A DNA stretch of 64,000 nt from Vitrella brassicaformis CCMP3155 (Eukaryota > Protista > Chromerida): assembly GCA_001179505.1 (NCBI GenBank), contig CDMY01000376.1, positions 62,001 to 126,000 on the forward strand, in the 5' to 3' direction. The notes under the pieces are model-generated. The model was not told the DNA's origin. It saw only the letters and a program-made list of their open reading frames with translations, and ran no database searches. Shown here piece after piece: positions 23,959 through 62,700 of this stretch. Position numbers and translations under genes: made by a program. Every line of letters starts with the position of its first letter. Within the stretch, counting starts at the first letter, position 1.

Positions 23959-24204
23959 TCAGACCGTCCGCTCCTTGTGCTGCTGCTGTCCTGCCGGCCC
24001 CCGCTCCTTGGCCGCCTTGAGGGCCGCCGCCTCCCTCCGCAGCTCCAGGACAATCCGAGCGAGTGCCTCCGGGTTGACGCCCTGCTCGCACAGGCACACC
24101 AGGATGGTCAGCTCGTCCCGGCTCAGCCCAGTGTTGAGCAGAGTCGCCATCTCGTGCAGAATGTCCATCACCTCGTCCGTATCACGGCTGGCCGAATCTG
24201 ACAT
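23959..24204 (-). CDS. MZT1: Mitotic-spindle organizing protein 1 (MOZART1), gamma-tubulin complex
   Basis: EVMDILHEMATLLNTGLSRDELTILVCLCEQGVNPEALARIVLELRRE is the MZT1 signature; 81 aa, single exon. Confidence 0.93.
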   Translation of the reverse strand: MSDSASRDTDEVMDILHEMATLLNTGLSRDELTILVCLCEQGVNPEALARIVLELRREAAALKAAKERGPAGQQQHKERTV

Positions 24205-24446
24205 GATCTTTCCGCCGGAGTTGGATGGGTAAACACGGAACACTCGTGCTGGTGAGGGGTGTAGGAGGATCCAATGCTCTCCACCACAAAACAGCGGCGG
24301 AGGGATCGCTCTTGAGCTTGCAATCCCATTCGTTCTCTCCCCTCCGAGAGAACGAACGCGACACCGGCGATCTAAAACCGATACCGGTGTAGACAGATCT
24401 GTGTGTTGATCTTCGCCTTTGAGCAGTTGCAGCTGATCTATCAGCG

Positions 24447-27400
24447 ATGGAGCCGTCTTCACTGCGCTTGTGGATGATGGCGCTGCTGGGCGCTGCTGCC
24501 CTCCTCAGCACAGCCTACGCGAGCCTCGAGGATCCCCACCCCTTCCCACACAAGGGCCCCTTCTTCGAGGTGACGTGACACAACACACAGCAGACAACAA
24601 GCTATCCATGTATGTCATTGATTGGTGCGCATCTGATCTGTGGTCTGATTCGATGCCTGCAGGGCTGGTACTTTCGCATCACCGTCCCTTCCCTCAACCA
24701 GTCGTTTGCGGCAGCCTTCGGCAATGTGCTGCCGGAGGGCGCCACCAAACACCCCGGTGCGACCTTTTCCCCATATACCAAAGACGGTGACCCGCCCGCG
24801 TACCTGGCGCTTCTGCACCAGCCCTCCCACCCCTCCCTCGCGGAGCCGCTGCAGCTGTATGACGCCTTCCCACCGATAGAGGGCGTGGCCATCACCCCAC
24901 AGGCATCTGTCGACCCGCCGCTCACCACACCGTCTTCAATGAGGTGGTGCGGCAATGTGGGGTGCTTCTGGACCAAGGCAGATGGCGGCACGGGGCTGGT
25001 CAACTCGACCACTCATTTCTCCTTCTCTGCGGGTGAGGTGTCGTTGGAAGGCGACCTTGGTCAGCCGGTGCCTTGGAGCAGCAGCGGCAAGGGGCCGATG
25101 GGCTGGGCTGTCGGCTTGCCCGTGCCGATTAAGTGGTTTGTTTATAGCGTCGCGTCGCCTGTGCATCGGCTGAGGTGGACGGACTCGCGCGGCACTCAGG
25201 AGCTGACGGACGGATTTGTGCACTTGGAGAAGAACTGGGGCAAAGGTGAGGTGCAGTCCGCACGCACACGCGGACACGACACGACAGCTGAGATACTTAC
25301 TTGGTGGTCTACGTGTGAAGCAATGGAATGTATCGCATCATCTGTATGTGACGTGACTGTATCAGGGTTCCCCACGCGGTACGTATGGGCGCAGTGCTAC
25401 GACCCGTCCACTGAGGCCTACTTTGCCCTCTCCTTCGGCGGCCTCGGGCAAGACGACTCGGTGCCGTCACAATCGCCATCCAATGAATCTCTGTCCGATC
25501 CAGCGGTGCCTGTATTCCTTGTGGGCTTTCGAAATCCGAAAGAGGCCGTCGCGGTCGACTTCAGGCGCGACACGGCCGTCGTGACGGCCAGCCAAGTGGC
25601 GCCGGAAGCGGGATTCTTCACACGTAAGGACACCGCGGTTTAGGGTCGCATGTCTGTGAGTGCGTTGTTTGACTGGTGTGTGCATGGCTTGCAGTGAGTT
25701 TGCGAGGCATTAGTTTGGCGAGCAGTCTGCAGGTGACAGTTCGAGCTGAGCCGAGGAGCTTCAGCAAATGGCTCAGAGGACCGGTGCCCACCGGTCAGCC
25801 GCTGCAACCAACCACACAGACACACACATGCAGATGCGTTTATGTTGGCTCGTGTCTTGCTTCCAGGTTTCCGAAAGGAGAGCTTCCAGTCGTTCTCTGC
25901 AGATGCTCGCGTCGTCTACACGTAAAGACAGCACACACGAGTGCTCGTACTCCTGTCACGTCTGTCTGTATGTGTGTGTCAGGTCTGTCGGCCGTCGGAT
26001 CCGCCCCCGGCGTCGTGGCAAGGTGGTCAGCCTCATGAGCGGCTGTGCCTTGGAGTTCGGCGGCACTTTCGCAGAGGCTCTCGCACCTCTCCCCCACGGG
26101 GGGGTGCCAGCCGCCATTGACTGCAAGGGCGTGTGGGGCGCATGGTCCGTGTGCGACAAAAACTGTGTCCGGCGGCGGACGTACCAGGTGCTCACGGAAG
26201 CACAGGGAGGGGGCAAGAAGTGCCTCCACGACGACGGCGACAGGGAGGCACAGCTGTGCACAGAGGAACAAGACTCTTCATGTGGAGAGGCAGGTGCGAA
26301 CGAGGGAGGGATGGATCAATGCCAAGGCGACACACCTGAAGGGATTCCCGTCTGTCTGTCTGTCTGTCTGCGTGTCTGTCTGCAGCTGAGTGTGAGGGCC
26401 GATGGGGCGAGTGGGGCGAGTGCGACAGCCAATGCAGGAGGACCCGCAGGTTCACGTAAGCGCAGCGATACACACACATGCCATTGGCCTCCCTCGCCCG
26501 CCCGCACGTCCGTGCGTTCTCTCTGCAGAGTGGAGGGGAACTGCCCTTCCAAGCAGCAGACTGACCAAATGCAGGTGGCCACCTGCCCGCCAGACATGTG
26601 TCAAAGCACCAAGCCGTCAGGGGGTGACCAGTTCCTCCCCAAGAGCAGCCAGGAGGGCTCTGTCACTGTCGACCTCACACTCAACGTCCAATACGGAGAG
26701 GTCGGTGAAGACACTCCATCGACCCGCCCACCCACCCACCAATCCACCCGCACTTCTCTCTTCCCCCTTCTCTCTCTGTTTGTTCAGGTGGCCGATGTGG
26801 CCACTGTGTTCACAGACACCCTGTCGAATTGCCTCAGTCAACTGACAGAGGTGCCGCGGGAGCGTCTGTCCGTCGACATGGCCACCCCGCCCCTCTCTGA
26901 GGACAACGAGGAGGACAACGTGACTGTCGAGGTGGTCATTGCCAAGGGAGACCAGCCCTCTGCAGCCGATGTGCTGGCCAAGCTGCGGGAGAGGTACGCC
27001 GAGCGGCTGAGGATGGGCCGCTTTGGCAACGACGTGCGCATCATCGGGCTGGATGGGAAGGTGCAGGCCGCCCCTGCTGCAGGTGAGCAGAGATTGGGTT
27101 GGGAGAGGGCTGGATGTGATGTGGCCTGCCCGAAACGTGCTGATGTCTTCTGTCAGCATCAGTGGGGGAACCCGTCCCTGGCGATGGCGATTCGCCCGTG
27201 CTGCCGATCGGCCTGCCAGTGATATTCGGTAGGGCCAGCGGAGCACAGCTAGGCGACCAACACCCACAATGTTCTCTGTGTGTCCATGCAGGTGTTCTTT
27301 CAGCTTTCATCATCATGGTCGCCCTAGTCTGCGGGGGCTGGTGCATGTGCCGCCGGTGCAGAGGCAAGGAGCGCCTGCTGCAGTCCGCCGATGACTCATC

Positions 27401-27747
27401 TCCCGAGGCCTCACACAGCAGCGCCACTGGATCGACAGCGAGAAAGGTCAGAAATGCGTCATTATTAGAGATGTGGTGGAATGATCCGTGTGTCTCCCAG
27501 GCTGACATGAAGTCTTGCGGGGCGCCCCAGACTGGCCAGGGGTTTGGCTATGATGGAATGAAGGTGAGCAGGACATCCCTTACACGCACAGCCAGACGAG
27601 AGACACTGTGTGTCCATGAATGCTAGGACGAAGCTGAGGATATGGGTGGCGACATATCGCTGGGCGTGGCGCCCACCCCGACGAGCCAGACGCCCAGCAG
27701 CAGGTCGGTGGTGCCCGAGGACCTCACGGCCAACCACTGTAAGTGAA
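24447..27747 (+). CDS. Type-I membrane protein: signal peptide + tocopherol-cyclase-like domain + 2 TSP1/TSR + SEA-like domain + TM + cytoplasmic tail
   Basis: PFFE|GWYFRI, WFVYSVASPV, VHLEKNWGK|GFPTRYVWAQ and CALEFGG are followed in the same exon by DCKGVWGAWSVCDKNCVRRR, then ECEGRWGEWGECDSQCRRTRR. TM VIFGVLSAFIIMVALVCGGWCMC. Exon phases are consistent up to the tail; the last codons are uncertain. Confidence 0.8.
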
Positions 27748-28278
27748 GCAATCCATCAGGCTTTCCACACACGGGACTTGTCCGTTCACATCGTGTTTGG
27801 TTTGCAGGAGCGTCGTAGGGATAATGTGATTGAGGGAGGCGTCGGGTCGGTCGCCCACTGCTGTCTGGTCTCTGTCGTTTTCTCTGTGTGTCCGAGCGTT
27901 TTGCGTTTTGCGGTGTGGTGCAAGTGTGTGTAGATCTATCTGTGGTGCTCGATACTTGTAGAGTAGACAGATGGGAAGGAAGGCGGCTGTGTGCGACTGC
28001 ATGCCATTGTGTGTGTGTGTGTGTGCACATAATGTGTATGTCTGTTTGCAATACGCGAACTAATTGACTACGTACATCGCATCACGCCTCAGGCGGGATG
28101 TAACAGTGCAGATCACTTCAGCATTCCTGCAGCATTATTCTGCTGCATACGATACGTGCCTCTGTATAGTTGAGAAACCGCTTCTGGGTCAAAGGGTTTG
28201 TTACCCTATAGCCCCACGAGAGGCCAAAGTGGCGTTTGTGGGCCTTGTCGGACAGCTGTGCGTTGACCTCAGAGCCAA

Positions 28279-59786: not shown

Positions 59787-62700
59787 TCACCCACCCCCTT
59801 GTGGTATACGATGGCCATACCCCGCCGGTTGCCGTCTGGCCAAGAGTATGGCCTGAATGGTCTGCATATTGCGGTGGCTCTGCTGGTGCAGGGCCTGCAC
59901 GCTGCGATAGAGGGCACCCAACGCGTCGTCAGGCAAAGACTGCAACGCGCTAGGGTTCAACCTGCACACATCCATCCAATCCACACAGACGGACACAAGG
60001 CATGCACTCCTGCTTTGCTGTGCTGTGTTTGTCGGCGTGCGGGAGGGTGTGGGGCTCACTCGCTTTGTATCTGCCTCAGTTCGTTGTCCTTGGCGGCCAG
60101 CAGGGCCTCGGCGTGACGAAGCTGAGCATCGTGATCAACTCTGACACACGGACAGAAGGGACACGTGTGTCGATGCCCCGTCGGTAAGTGCATCCCTTTT
60201 CCCGTCGCTCTCGCTCACACACATTGTCCGTCTGAGTGTTTCGATTTCCTCTGTCGAGCGCACCAGCACGCGGCGGAGGCCCTCACTCTCCTCCCTGTGC
60301 ACCAACGCACAGACACGCAGACAGAGGAATCAGACACACGGATGGATGGATGGACGGACGGCTGCTTGGTTTGCTCACTCGTGCTGCTGCCTCTGATGTA
60401 CGTGCGCCGCCCTCTCCTGGGCTAGCTCCGATGACAGCACCCGACTGACACAGAGAAAATGGGTACAGAAAGATATTCGTCTGCGGGCCTGTGTGTGTGT
60501 GTGTGCGTGTATCACTTACTTGTGTTGCTGGACGGCCTGCAGCCGCGCCACGTCCGATCGGTGCCGCTTGTCACGAGATGTAACGACCTCACTGCAGTGC
60601 ACGGAGGCCATTGACCTCATGTGGTTTGTTTCCATTCCTTCCATTTCTTACACGTATGCCTCGACTTGCTCGACAGCCTTGTGCAGCTTGGCCACCCCCT
60701 CCCGCAGCACACCCTCAATCCTCGACCGCTCCTCCCGCACCTCCTTGGCACCGGGCGTCACCACACCACCGCCACCATGATGCGCACTGCCGTCTGCCGC
60801 CCGTCGATGGTGATGATGCTGCTGTTTGCCCTGCTGCAGCGGGGGGAACGCCGTCTCGCTGTCAAGGTCGATGCGCGGTGTGGTGTAGACTGTCTCGGCG
60901 CGTGAAGATGTGTACAGACCACCCCCAGCGCCCCCTCCAGCCCCTCCCCCCTTGGCCCGCATCTGCGTCTGCATCTGTTGTTCAGCGGTTTCCTCCTCAG
61001 GAATGGGTGAGGGCGGTGAGCGGTTGGGCGGCGTGAACGCGTCGAGATGCAGCCGCAGATAGGCCTGCAGGTCAGTGAGGGCCCGGAGTGGTGGTGAGCG
61101 GGGCGTGTCGTCCCCCTCTCCCCCTCCCCGTCCCCCTCCCTCTCCCTCCTGCTGCTGCTGATGGTGCTGGTGTTGGTGGTCCTGTATCGGCAGCTGGAAT
61201 GGGCCGACAACGGTTGGCGTGGGGTCGTTCTCGGCGGTAGGTGATGTCTGCGACAGTGCTGGTGGGTCGGCAGGGACTGCCAGCGGTGTGTCGTGGTCCT
61301 GGTCTCCCTCACGGTGGCCATCGTCATCATCATCGTGACGCAACATGTCCAAACGAAGCTCCTCTGACGCCTGATGATACCCGACACACACACGCCGACA
61401 GTGCACACCTCCATCCATCCAGCCAGCCATCCATCCATCCATCTAGCCACCCTTCTTTGCTCTTACATGTCCGAAGATCTCGGCCAGCAGGGCATCCTCC
61501 TCACCCACACCCACACCGGCCCCATTCCTGGACCCACGCGAGCCGGGCCGAGCAGGCGCCATACCACCAACCGCAGGCGGCAGCGGCAGCCGCACCCCAG
61601 CGTCGGGAATCGACGCACTCGATGACGCATGCTCATGCTCGCCTGTCCGCGCGCCCCCCTCCTGTTTTGCTTCCTCTGCGTTGGTCTGGTGCGATGGGTC
61701 TCTGCCGTTGACGGGCAGCGGACTGAGCAGGAAGGGCCAGGCGTGACGCGAGTCACCCGTGCAGAAGCCGGAGAACGACGCGGAAGGGGTGGACGCTTGC
61801 GGCTGTTGGTTGCTGCCGTTCCCATCCGTCCACTGGTGCGGGTGGTCCAGACCCACCTCCACCTCCACCTCTCCCTCCCCCTCTGCCTCGCCGTCGCCGT
61901 CAATGTCATCATCCCACCCATCGGCATCCTTGTCGTGTTCGTCCTCATCGAGCTGGTCGTCATCGATGGAGGGCTGGTGTCGTGAGTCGGCCGCACTGGA
62001 TGAGGACACCGGCAGGCGGCCCAGCACGGGGGTGTTGCGACGCCTCGCCTGGCGTGCGCCCTCGGCCGGGGTCAGGTTGGGCTCGCCCTGACCAAGAAGG
62101 GCAGACAAAAGCAAAGCGGTATGTGTGGTGGATGGGGTGAGTGTTCCGTCATTTGGTCGCGTACCTCGTCCCAGAGGTGTAGCTGTCTGCGCCACAGTCG
62201 CACACGGCTGTCAAAATGACGCTTGGGACAGCACTGCAGTGCACATGAGAAAGGGCGGACACACGCAGGAGAGAGTGTGGTGTGGTGTGGTGTGTCCACA
62301 GACATACGTACTTATCCATCCATCCATCCATCCATGTATGTATCTCTCTCTGTATACCTCGTGTATGTTGGGTGTTTGTGGGTGCAGACTGTCGCTCCAG
62401 TGGGGCTTGCGGCGGTCCTTAGGCACATGGGCACTGTACTGACGATACCCCTCCGTGTCCTGCAGGACAGACACACACACACACACACACACACACCGAC
62501 ACGAGCACACGAATGAGTGCCGCACCCACCGCATACGTGCAGTGAAGTGCAGGAAAGCCATACAATCCTGATGGCCCGTGGTTGTGTATTGATTGAGTCT
62601 TGGCTCGCTCACCTTCCCAATCTCAATCTGCCGGCCGCGCTGTAACAGACGATGCTCATCCAACTCTGAAATGACCATAAATGCACGCACGTCAATCACA

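Follow-up and report, generated by a model that had tools for sequence, protein, structure and literature searches.

A tocopherol-cyclase-family domain fused to thrombospondin repeats and a predicted membrane anchor in the chromerid Vitrella brassicaformis

The 64,000-nucleotide stretch of DNA analyzed here (the window; positions 62,001 to 126,000, forward strand, of contig CDMY01000376.1 in assembly GCA_001179505.1 of Vitrella brassicaformis CCMP3155) carries, from its position 24447 on the forward strand, a gene for a 789-residue protein in which a domain of the tocopherol cyclase family (PF14249) is joined within a single exon to thrombospondin repeats (TSRs), the order after them being an SEA-like stalk, a predicted transmembrane helix, and a cytoplasmic tail. 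Public RNA contigs confirm that this is one gene with one transcript and that the fusion of the barrel domain to the TSRs is genuine. The reading that we favor, at a probability of roughly 0.6, is that the protein represents a membrane-tethered version of an extracytoplasmic module that converts isoprenoids or other lipids, or captures lipids. All positions below are those of the window.

The RNA evidence consists of Logan contigs from four public runs (2013–2015) belonging to three studies, placed on 24200–28150. Canonical GT..AG introns of 54–120 nt join 24447–27747 on the forward strand into a single open frame, and spliced contigs support 12 of the 13 introns that touch coding sequence, each joint being present in three or four runs and coinciding exactly with the intron position derived by eye from the sequence. 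The ATG at 24447 is the first ATG of the transcripts. Two contigs, X6 rec13 (1378 nt, from 24402) and X7 rec18 (1422 nt, from 24358), are free of mismatches as far as 26197; they span the 5′ untranslated region (UTR), exons 1–5, and part of exon 6, and they end beyond the core of the first repeat (TSR1), WGAWSVCDKNC, so that the barrel domain and TSR1 lie on one mature spliced RNA. An earlier note on this DNA, made from the letters alone, had described one phase-consistent gene from 24447 onward, with the motif ALEFGG and the first TSR in a shared exon (25983–26293); both statements are borne out by the joints and by the mismatch-free contigs, and all of the motifs that it quoted (FEGWY, HLEKNWGKGFP, CALEFGG, the WGAW and WGEW of the two TSRs, VTVDLTLNV...VTVEVVI, CGGWCMCRRC, and YDGM) are found. 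Its gene end at the TGA 27745–27747 had to be corrected, because an RNA-seen intron (27739–27807) splits the stop codon and the protein therefore ends ...LTANH, two residues earlier, at 789 amino acids; left unspliced, this intron would add the residues CK ahead of the in-frame TGA. The GC content is 57%. The parts of the gene are as follows.

24358–24446, forward strand: 5′ UTR; RNA contigs start at 24358 and 24402, with no ATG upstream
24447, forward strand: start ATG, opening the phase-consistent frame of 13 coding exons
24570–24662, 25246–25365, 25624–25694, 25794–25866, and 25922–25982, forward strand: introns 1–5, GT..AG joints seen in spliced contigs
25983–26293, forward strand: exon 6, the fusion exon, with a basic loop (RRIRPRRRGK), CALEFGG, a 20-residue linker, and the whole of TSR1; joint 25921→25983 seen in RNA
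26456–26528, 26701–26787, 27083–27156, and 27229–27291, forward strand: introns 7–10, GT..AG joints seen in spliced contigs
27447–27500 and 27564–27626, forward strand: introns 11 and 12, GT..AG joints seen in spliced contigs
27739–27807, forward strand: last intron, joint 27738→27808 in all four runs; stop codon split T/GA (27738 and 27808–27809)
27808 to at least 28150, forward strand: 3′ UTR, from RNA contigs covering 27808–28150

The encoded protein is divided as listed here; L001 is a related metagenome contig described further below.

24447–24521, forward strand: predicted signal peptide, residues 1–25 (...STAYA/SLEDPH), a hydrophobic N terminus followed by the DPH start of the family, as in secreted relatives
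24522–26070, forward strand: predicted PF14249 tocopherol-cyclase-family (AttH-like) barrel, residues ~26–402, exons 1–6; from profile, Pfam, AlphaFold2, and Foldseek
26119–26286, forward strand: TSR1, residues 419–474, six Cys, WGAW; from Pfam TSP1_spondin, language-model clusters, and Cys pattern
26388–26601, forward strand: second repeat (TSR2), residues 478–524, six Cys, WGEW; split by intron 26456–26528 (joint 26455→26529 in RNA)
26656–27066, forward strand: juxtamembrane β-α-β-β-α-β domain, SEA-like, residues ~543–650; from AlphaFold2 and VIA-align
27198–27350, forward strand: single predicted transmembrane helix, residues ~670–699; split by intron 27229–27291
27330–27359, forward strand: Cys cluster CGGWCMCRRC at the cytosolic end of the helix; identical in L001
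27351–27738, forward strand: predicted cytoplasmic tail of ~90 residues with GFGYDGMK (a YxxΦ motif, 27549–27560) and an acidic DEAEDM stretch, both conserved in L001

By profile and by predicted structure, the N-terminal domain belongs to the PF14249 family and has the AttH-like double β-barrel fold; the VTE1/AttH-like barrel proposed in the earlier note thus stands at the level of family and fold. The Pfam Tocopherol_cycl profile matches the unspliced open reading frame (ORF) 24612–25640 with 20.6 bits (E 2.6e-4) over profile positions 3–34, the FEGWY region. When the same ORF was run exhaustively with phmmer against 1.84 billion representatives, 76 relatives were returned (best E 9.5e-24; identities 30–40%; lengths 49–473 amino acids). 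PF14249 is matched at E≤0.001 by 41 of 41 aligned relatives, and eight of the nine relatives scored in full lie above the Pfam cut-off, at 33–59 bits, the ninth (P0034, 24.8 bits) falling slightly under the gathering cut-off of 26.6; in full-length relatives the Pfam alignments extend to profile position 335, the ALEFGG end. When the spliced N-terminal 400 residues were compared with a local hidden Markov model (HMM) of 78 relatives made without the window sequence, the score was 283 bits (E 1.9e-88) over residues 14–402 and HMM positions 13–367 of 395, an end-to-end match well beyond chance that also confirms the register of exons 1–6.

The structural evidence points the same way. AlphaFold2, run on the ORF with the alignment of relatives, gave a model with a predicted TM-score (pTM) of 0.75, in which the low-confidence parts are the read-through intron and loops. 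Foldseek placed VTE1 first in Swiss-Prot, with the enzymes of Arabidopsis, maize, and rice in the top three places (E 3.6e-8 to 1.7e-7), followed by penF, CrtC, Fsa2-type Diels-Alderases, and the ceramide-binding SVF1; matches in the PDB were Fsa2, Phm7, CghA, AttH (2ich), kievitone hydratase (7a0t), and 25-phosphosteroid lyase. The Foldseek probability was 1.0 to VTE1, CrtC, Fsa2, Phm7, CghA, 2ich, and 7a0t, and the TM-scores to individual structures are just 0.4–0.5 because the model lacks exons 1 and 4–6 and includes the read-through intron. The top match in the ESM Atlas was a PF14249 cluster in which Mollusca is the commonest of the known phyla (TM-scores 0.66/0.61); the family alignment, used as a profile against PDB sequences, gave no matches. 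Most near-invariant residues of the family are kept, including E41, G42, W43, Y44, R46, W179, P186, W199, H228, E230, K231, N232, W233, F237, P238, W243, E397, and G399. At position 362, where the barrel has Gln for a conserved Glu, an alignment artefact arising from an ESF triplet three residues upstream was considered and rejected, as the gap-free alignment with the Alphamonas relative (GF....ESFSA / GF....QSFSA) favors a real substitution. The variable segment that precedes ALEFGG forms in this protein the strongly basic loop RRIRPRRRGK (25992–26021, residues ~377–386), for which 10 aligned relatives have unrelated sequence; dibasic processing and the binding of glycosaminoglycans are both conceivable roles for it.

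Named relatives of the barrel include Chromera velia Cvel_22795 (A0A0G4GPL4, annotated as "AttH domain-containing protein", 452 amino acids) and Alphamonas edax EP00386_P008389 (473 amino acids); others come from the molluscs Ostrea edulis, Littorina saxatilis, and Elysia marginata, from the rhizarian Lapot gusevi, and from a deltaproteobacterial metagenome-assembled genome. The relatives that were read have a hydrophobic signal sequence, reach DPH..P..GP.FEGWY within a few residues of it, and end 10–50 residues past ALEFGG, the nearest stand-alone kin being ~370–470 residues long in Chromera, Alphamonas, molluscs, Rhizaria, and bacteria. Judging from these sequences, PF14249 has an uncharacterized branch of stand-alone, signal-peptide-bearing proteins in chrompodellids, molluscs, a rhizarian, and bacteria. 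In a quick maximum-likelihood tree, the window barrel falls in a clade with Chromera Cvel_22795, Alphamonas edax, and P0065 (SH-aLRT 95), its branch being long and its precise position less certain; a WC....GCF Cys pair also marks this chrompodellid clade, the window barrel included. The earlier note had taken a family that is "normally soluble or plastoglobular" as its point of comparison, and this does not hold in that role, since the closest relatives are secreted stand-alone proteins with signal peptides. Because those relatives are already secreted, the novelty would lie in the tethering of a secreted module and not in the relocation of a plastid enzyme. Some mollusc PF14249 entries of the relatives set (P0002–P0077) bear unrelated automatic names, for example "Apextrin C-terminal domain-containing".

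Downstream of the barrel, both TSRs follow the pattern C-x3-W-x2-W-x2-C-x3-C with three further Cys. TSR1 matches Pfam TSP1_spondin with E 6e-6 (26.9 bits, under the gathering cut-off of 41), and ten of its ten best named language-model feature clusters are TSP_1; the first half of TSR2 (22 residues) matches TSP1_spondin with E 0.019, and TSR2 is conserved without gaps in L001. The two TSRs that had been called from the letters are thus upheld by the WxxW and six-Cys pattern and by the profile matches. The stalk that comes next was modeled by AlphaFold2 on its sequence alone; in the model, which is a β-α-β-β-α-β domain (pLDDT 57), a read-through intron forms a loop. Its best Foldseek match is the Gpr126 ectodomain (E 0.02), amid generic ferredoxin-like folds, and the top three matches of this pLDDT-57 model in VIA-align are SEA domains (Gpr126 residues 368–527, Z 9.1; MUC16 1ivz, 8.8; MUC16 7sa9, 8.6), followed by EpCAM/TROP2 C-domains and then by ribosomal protein S6 and other ferredoxin-like folds at Z 7–8. 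Pfam SEA (PF01390) gave no match at E≤1 on exons 8 and 9, and the stalk has no G/SVVV-type autoproteolysis motif between β2 and β3. The sequence EGSVTV, which holds G-S-V, was considered as an SEA autoproteolysis site and rejected, as it sits in β1 at the start of the stalk. The earlier description of the stalk as SEA-like is therefore fair as far as the three leading structural matches go; membership of the SEA family, given the narrow margin over the ferredoxin-like folds, the low-confidence model, and the absence of a Pfam match on those exons, is not established.

Apart from the signal peptide, the transmembrane helix contains the sole 19-residue windows with a Kyte-Doolittle value above 1.6. 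We infer that the N-terminal part lies outside the cytosol, because the helix is followed by RRCRGK (positive-inside rule); the four N-glycosylation sequons are all N-terminal of the helix. The Cys cluster at its cytosolic end offers candidate palmitoylation sites, and the tail holds 13 acidic and 10 basic residues and no Trp. The helix with its Cys cluster and the tail with the YxxΦ motif YDGM, which had been noticed at the outset, are all present in the spliced 789-residue protein.

One relative of the C-terminal half was found, the ENA metagenome contig L001 (ERZ893784, k147_3610605, 2587 nt), of which protein P0001 is the read-through ORF. Positions 1–1509 of this contig align to 26292–27728 at 82% DNA identity with shared intron positions, and the similarity ends in the 3′ UTR; because of this identity and these shared introns, the ERZ893784 sample appears to hold a related Vitrella-like organism. 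L001 begins at the end of exon 6, and the comparison covers the part from TSR2 to the tail and not the barrel. Over that part, exons 7–10 and 12–13 are 81–94% identical with no gaps or gaps in frame, exon 11 falls to 73% with indels that keep the frame, and the introns are 39–81% identical with indels; dN/dS is 0.42 over 178 codons. L001 keeps TSR2, the stalk, the transmembrane helix, CGGWCMCRRC, GFGYDGMK, and the acidic DEAEDM...VAPTPTSQTPSSRSVVP tail.

The RNA also contains a second expressed variant of the C-terminal region (26578 and 26951–27186), either allelic or paralogous, which is present in all four runs at ~40% of the depth; it differs by six substitutions in 26951–27082 and by replacement of a 35-nt block past the 27082 joint, and the N-terminal contigs are free of variants. 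Two simple repeats, (GTCT)n in intron 6 (26343–26384) and (GT)n in the 3′ UTR (28000–28037), are masked and interrupt the RNA contigs. Upstream, on the reverse strand at 23962–24204, lies a divergent gene for an 81-residue MOZART1 protein of the gamma-tubulin ring complex (Pfam PF12554, E 1.1e-21); because its ATG is ~240 bp from that of the gene studied here, a bidirectional promoter region is probably common to both genes.

A PF14249 domain combined with TSRs was not found elsewhere. None of the 76 phmmer relatives among the 1.84 billion representatives exceeds 473 residues, which is too short for the fusion. A word-based protein search with the C-terminal ORF 25768–27219 returned P0001 only, and one with the N-terminal ORF returned no matches. 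A further word-based search with a 23-sequence alignment led by the 473-residue member, for which fusions of up to 828 residues were eligible, had only three members of the query itself among the matches listed, which is weak evidence. Two scans of JGI metagenomes with exons 6 and 9 gave no relatives, in data in which eukaryotic genes are fragmented, and literature searched on tocopherol cyclase or PF14249 with thrombospondin and on AttH gave nothing on this architecture. As the candidates were limited and eukaryotic genes in metagenomes are fragmented, these searches are moderate, not strong, evidence for uniqueness; to that extent they agree with the earlier note, which knew of no described protein with this architecture. 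The modules themselves are known; what is new is their combination, and the lineage had been noted before for the inventiveness of its extracellular architectures.

The favored reading would make this protein a type I single-pass membrane glycoprotein that enters the secretory pathway through its signal peptide. Its N-terminal 380 residues would form a two-lobed β-barrel facing the cell exterior or the secretory/endolysosomal lumen, derived, as the tree suggests, from the chrompodellid clade of stand-alone secreted proteins and joined within one exon to two TSRs, with the SEA-like domain, the transmembrane helix, the Cys cluster, and the 90-residue tail behind them. The TSRs and the SEA-like domain would act as a spacer keeping the barrel off the membrane; the Cys cluster would likely be palmitoylated, and the conserved YxxΦ tail may provide a trafficking signal, perhaps for endocytic sorting. 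Whether the protein would reside at the plasma membrane or in an internal compartment seems to us a roughly even choice. Many members of the superfamily protonate an isoprenoid C=C bond, adding water or a phenolic OH group, and VTE1 closes the chromanol ring onto a prenyl double bond; CrtC and kievitone hydratase hydrate such isoprenoid double bonds. In characterized members, hydrophobic ligands (isoprenoids, polyketides, or lipids) sit between the lobes, and so an isoprenoid or lipid ligand would presumably be held there in this protein too and be either converted by an enzyme or captured by a binder. Kievitone hydratase, for example, is an extracellular glycoprotein (PMC5805349), and AttH-like hydratases such as the archaeal hydroxy-GDGT synthase hydrate double bonds in isoprenoid lipid tails (bioRxiv 10.1101/2025.10.20.683597). 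More tentatively, the protein could be a cell-surface enzyme-receptor, in which an active isoprenoid or prenyl-phenol cyclase or hydratase on a TSR/SEA stalk would convert or capture an external lipophile (a quinone, carotenoid, sterol, or terpenoid signal being candidates) and be internalized via the YxxΦ tail; we regard this as possible and would put no great trust in it.

Several observations weigh against the tethered lipid-converting or lipid-capturing module. The 20.6 bits scored by the unspliced pieces against PF14249 are below the gathering cut-off of 26.6. The barrel deviates at F134M, W241Y, and E362Q, and the Cys that the family conserves in D.C.G and C.ES are missing from it; given these deviating positions, it is possibly not an active enzyme but a binder or an enzyme with altered function. 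Motifs of the YxxΦ type are frequent by chance. Finally, the joint 26293→26386, which would remove intron 6, is absent from the joints listed for the four runs. This joint adjoins the masked (GTCT)n repeat at 26343–26384, and one joint was reported as dropped at repeats. The GT/AG donor and acceptor of intron 6 are conserved in L001, where exon 7 is gap-free, and retaining intron 6 while splicing the RNA-seen intron 7 would put exon 8 out of frame; for these reasons, intron 6 is taken to be spliced. The missing joint and the second allele or paralog, which complicates the contigs, are also what speaks for an artefact in which two adjacent genes, or the two sides of an assembly join, were taken as one. 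We find this scarcely credible: the fusion point lies inside exon 6, under mismatch-free spliced contigs that start in the 5′ UTR, all other joints occur in three or four runs from three studies, L001 conserves both exon 7 and the splice sites, and between the two parts there is neither a stop codon nor an alternative start.

The other explanations that have to be weighed accept the fusion and read its parts differently. The protein might be resident in an internal compartment (endolysosomal, vacuolar, or secretory), where a lumenal barrel would act on endogenous or ingested isoprenoid lipids and the YxxΦ motif would serve for sorting; the conserved GYDGM of the tail, the juxtamembrane Cys cluster, and the action of SVF1 and of the hydratases of the superfamily on cellular lipids are consistent with this, whereas TSRs and SEA-like domains are typical of surface or secreted proteins and the closest relatives carry a signal peptide alone and look secreted, so that we consider it unlikely. 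An adhesin of the TRAP/MIC2 kind is a more doubtful proposition. Here the TSRs, perhaps with the barrel as a head replacing the von Willebrand factor A (vWA) domain, would bind a substrate or host, and the acidic tail would connect to the cytoskeleton in the attachment or gliding of zoospores. The order of TSR, transmembrane helix, and acidic tail is indeed similar, and chromerids possess micronemal-type TSP1/vWA proteins (PMC4501334); on the other hand, no piece has a Pfam vWA match at E≤1, the tail of ~90 residues has no Trp, the outer half of the transmembrane helix shows by eye no AGG-type small-residue helix-breaking motif, the conserved motif of the tail is YxxΦ and not an acidic-Trp end of the aldolase/connector type, and Woo et al. 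report no TRAP orthologues in chromerids (PMC4501334). The absence of a vWA match and the Trp-less tail sustain the earlier verdict that this is not a canonical TRAP. That the gene encodes the true tocopherol cyclase (VTE1) of the alga, making plastid chromanols, would suit the PF14249 family and fold as well as the table of Woo et al. 2015 (Figure 2-source data 1, row 996), in which VTE1 is blank for both Chromera and Vitrella and HPT and gamma-TMT are entered (PMC4501334). This is nevertheless very improbable, because the DPH start of the barrel lies within ~4 residues of the signal peptide, too close to accommodate a plastid transit peptide, and because the TSRs, transmembrane helix, and tail are secretory or surface features; in addition, identity to plant VTE1 is 14–15%, and the clade takes in the non-photosynthetic Alphamonas, molluscs, and bacteria.

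The protein indicates that PF14249 is not solely a family of plastid enzymes and that it includes a secreted branch in chrompodellids, molluscs, Rhizaria, and bacteria, no member of which has a known function; in this alga, one PF14249 copy would be membrane-tethered on modules (TSR, SEA-like) typical of the surface proteins of apicomplexan relatives. If the barrel is active, isoprenoid chemistry would take place extracellularly at the surface of a protist cell, and if the enzyme-receptor proposal is true, it would give the first functional handle on the secreted branch of the tocopherol cyclase family. Because the protein would be anchored, is expressed in culture, and can be tagged, it may offer a convenient entry to the substrate of that branch. 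Chromerids are known to have expanded their repertoire of novel extracellular architectures (PMC4501334), of which this protein is one more documented example; it would bear on TRAP-based gliding only if adhesion were shown.

Among known systems, the closest are the stand-alone secreted PF14249 proteins of Chromera, Alphamonas, Ostrea, Littorina, and Elysia, which share with the window protein the signal peptide and the motifs DPH..FEGWY.R, H.EKNWG..FP..W.W.Q, and ALEFGG, at 30–40% identity over the full length of the barrel. They have no TSR, stalk, transmembrane helix, or tail, and all are uncharacterized; the window barrel differs from them in the missing Cys of D.C.G and C.ES and in E362Q, W241Y, and F134M. 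The plant and cyanobacterial VTE1 (Q94FY7 and its relatives) is the best structural match in Swiss-Prot (E 3.6e-8, probability 1.0) and belongs to the same Pfam family as the relatives, at 14–15% identity and TM-scores of 0.42–0.45 for the partial model. VTE1 is plastid-targeted and either soluble or associated with plastoglobules; the window protein, by contrast, is predicted to be routed by a signal peptide and anchored in a membrane, with no transit peptide. So far as we know, no catalytic residues have been defined for VTE1, and a literature search on the catalytic residues of tocopherol cyclase found no active-site residues for it. The chromanol-ring-closing enzyme of chromerids is without an entry in the published metabolic map (PMC4501334). 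Kievitone hydratase (7a0t), the carotenoid 1,2-hydratase CrtC, AttH (2ich), and the archaeal hydroxy-GDGT synthase have the double-barrel fold in common with the window barrel at 8–12% identity, a likeness at the level of the fold, and none has a TSR or a transmembrane anchor; of these, kievitone hydratase is a secreted glycoprotein acting extracellularly on a prenylated phenolic (PMC5805349). The likeness to TRAP/MIC2 is that of a type I membrane protein with one or more TSRs near the membrane-proximal region and an acidic cytoplasmic tail, whereas the window protein lacks a vWA/I domain, a sub-terminal Trp, and any recognizable rhomboid-type transmembrane motif, its tail is about double the length, and it carries an SEA-like domain between the TSRs and the transmembrane helix. 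This last position is that of the SEA modules of MUC16, Gpr126/ADGRG6, and the EpCAM/TROP2 C-domain, in which a β-α-β-β-α-β domain stands directly before the transmembrane helix; unlike them, the stalk of the window protein, as represented by its low-confidence model, has neither a Pfam SEA match nor the G/SVVV motif between β2 and β3, and it shares with them the predicted β-α-β-β-α-β order and the place next to the membrane.

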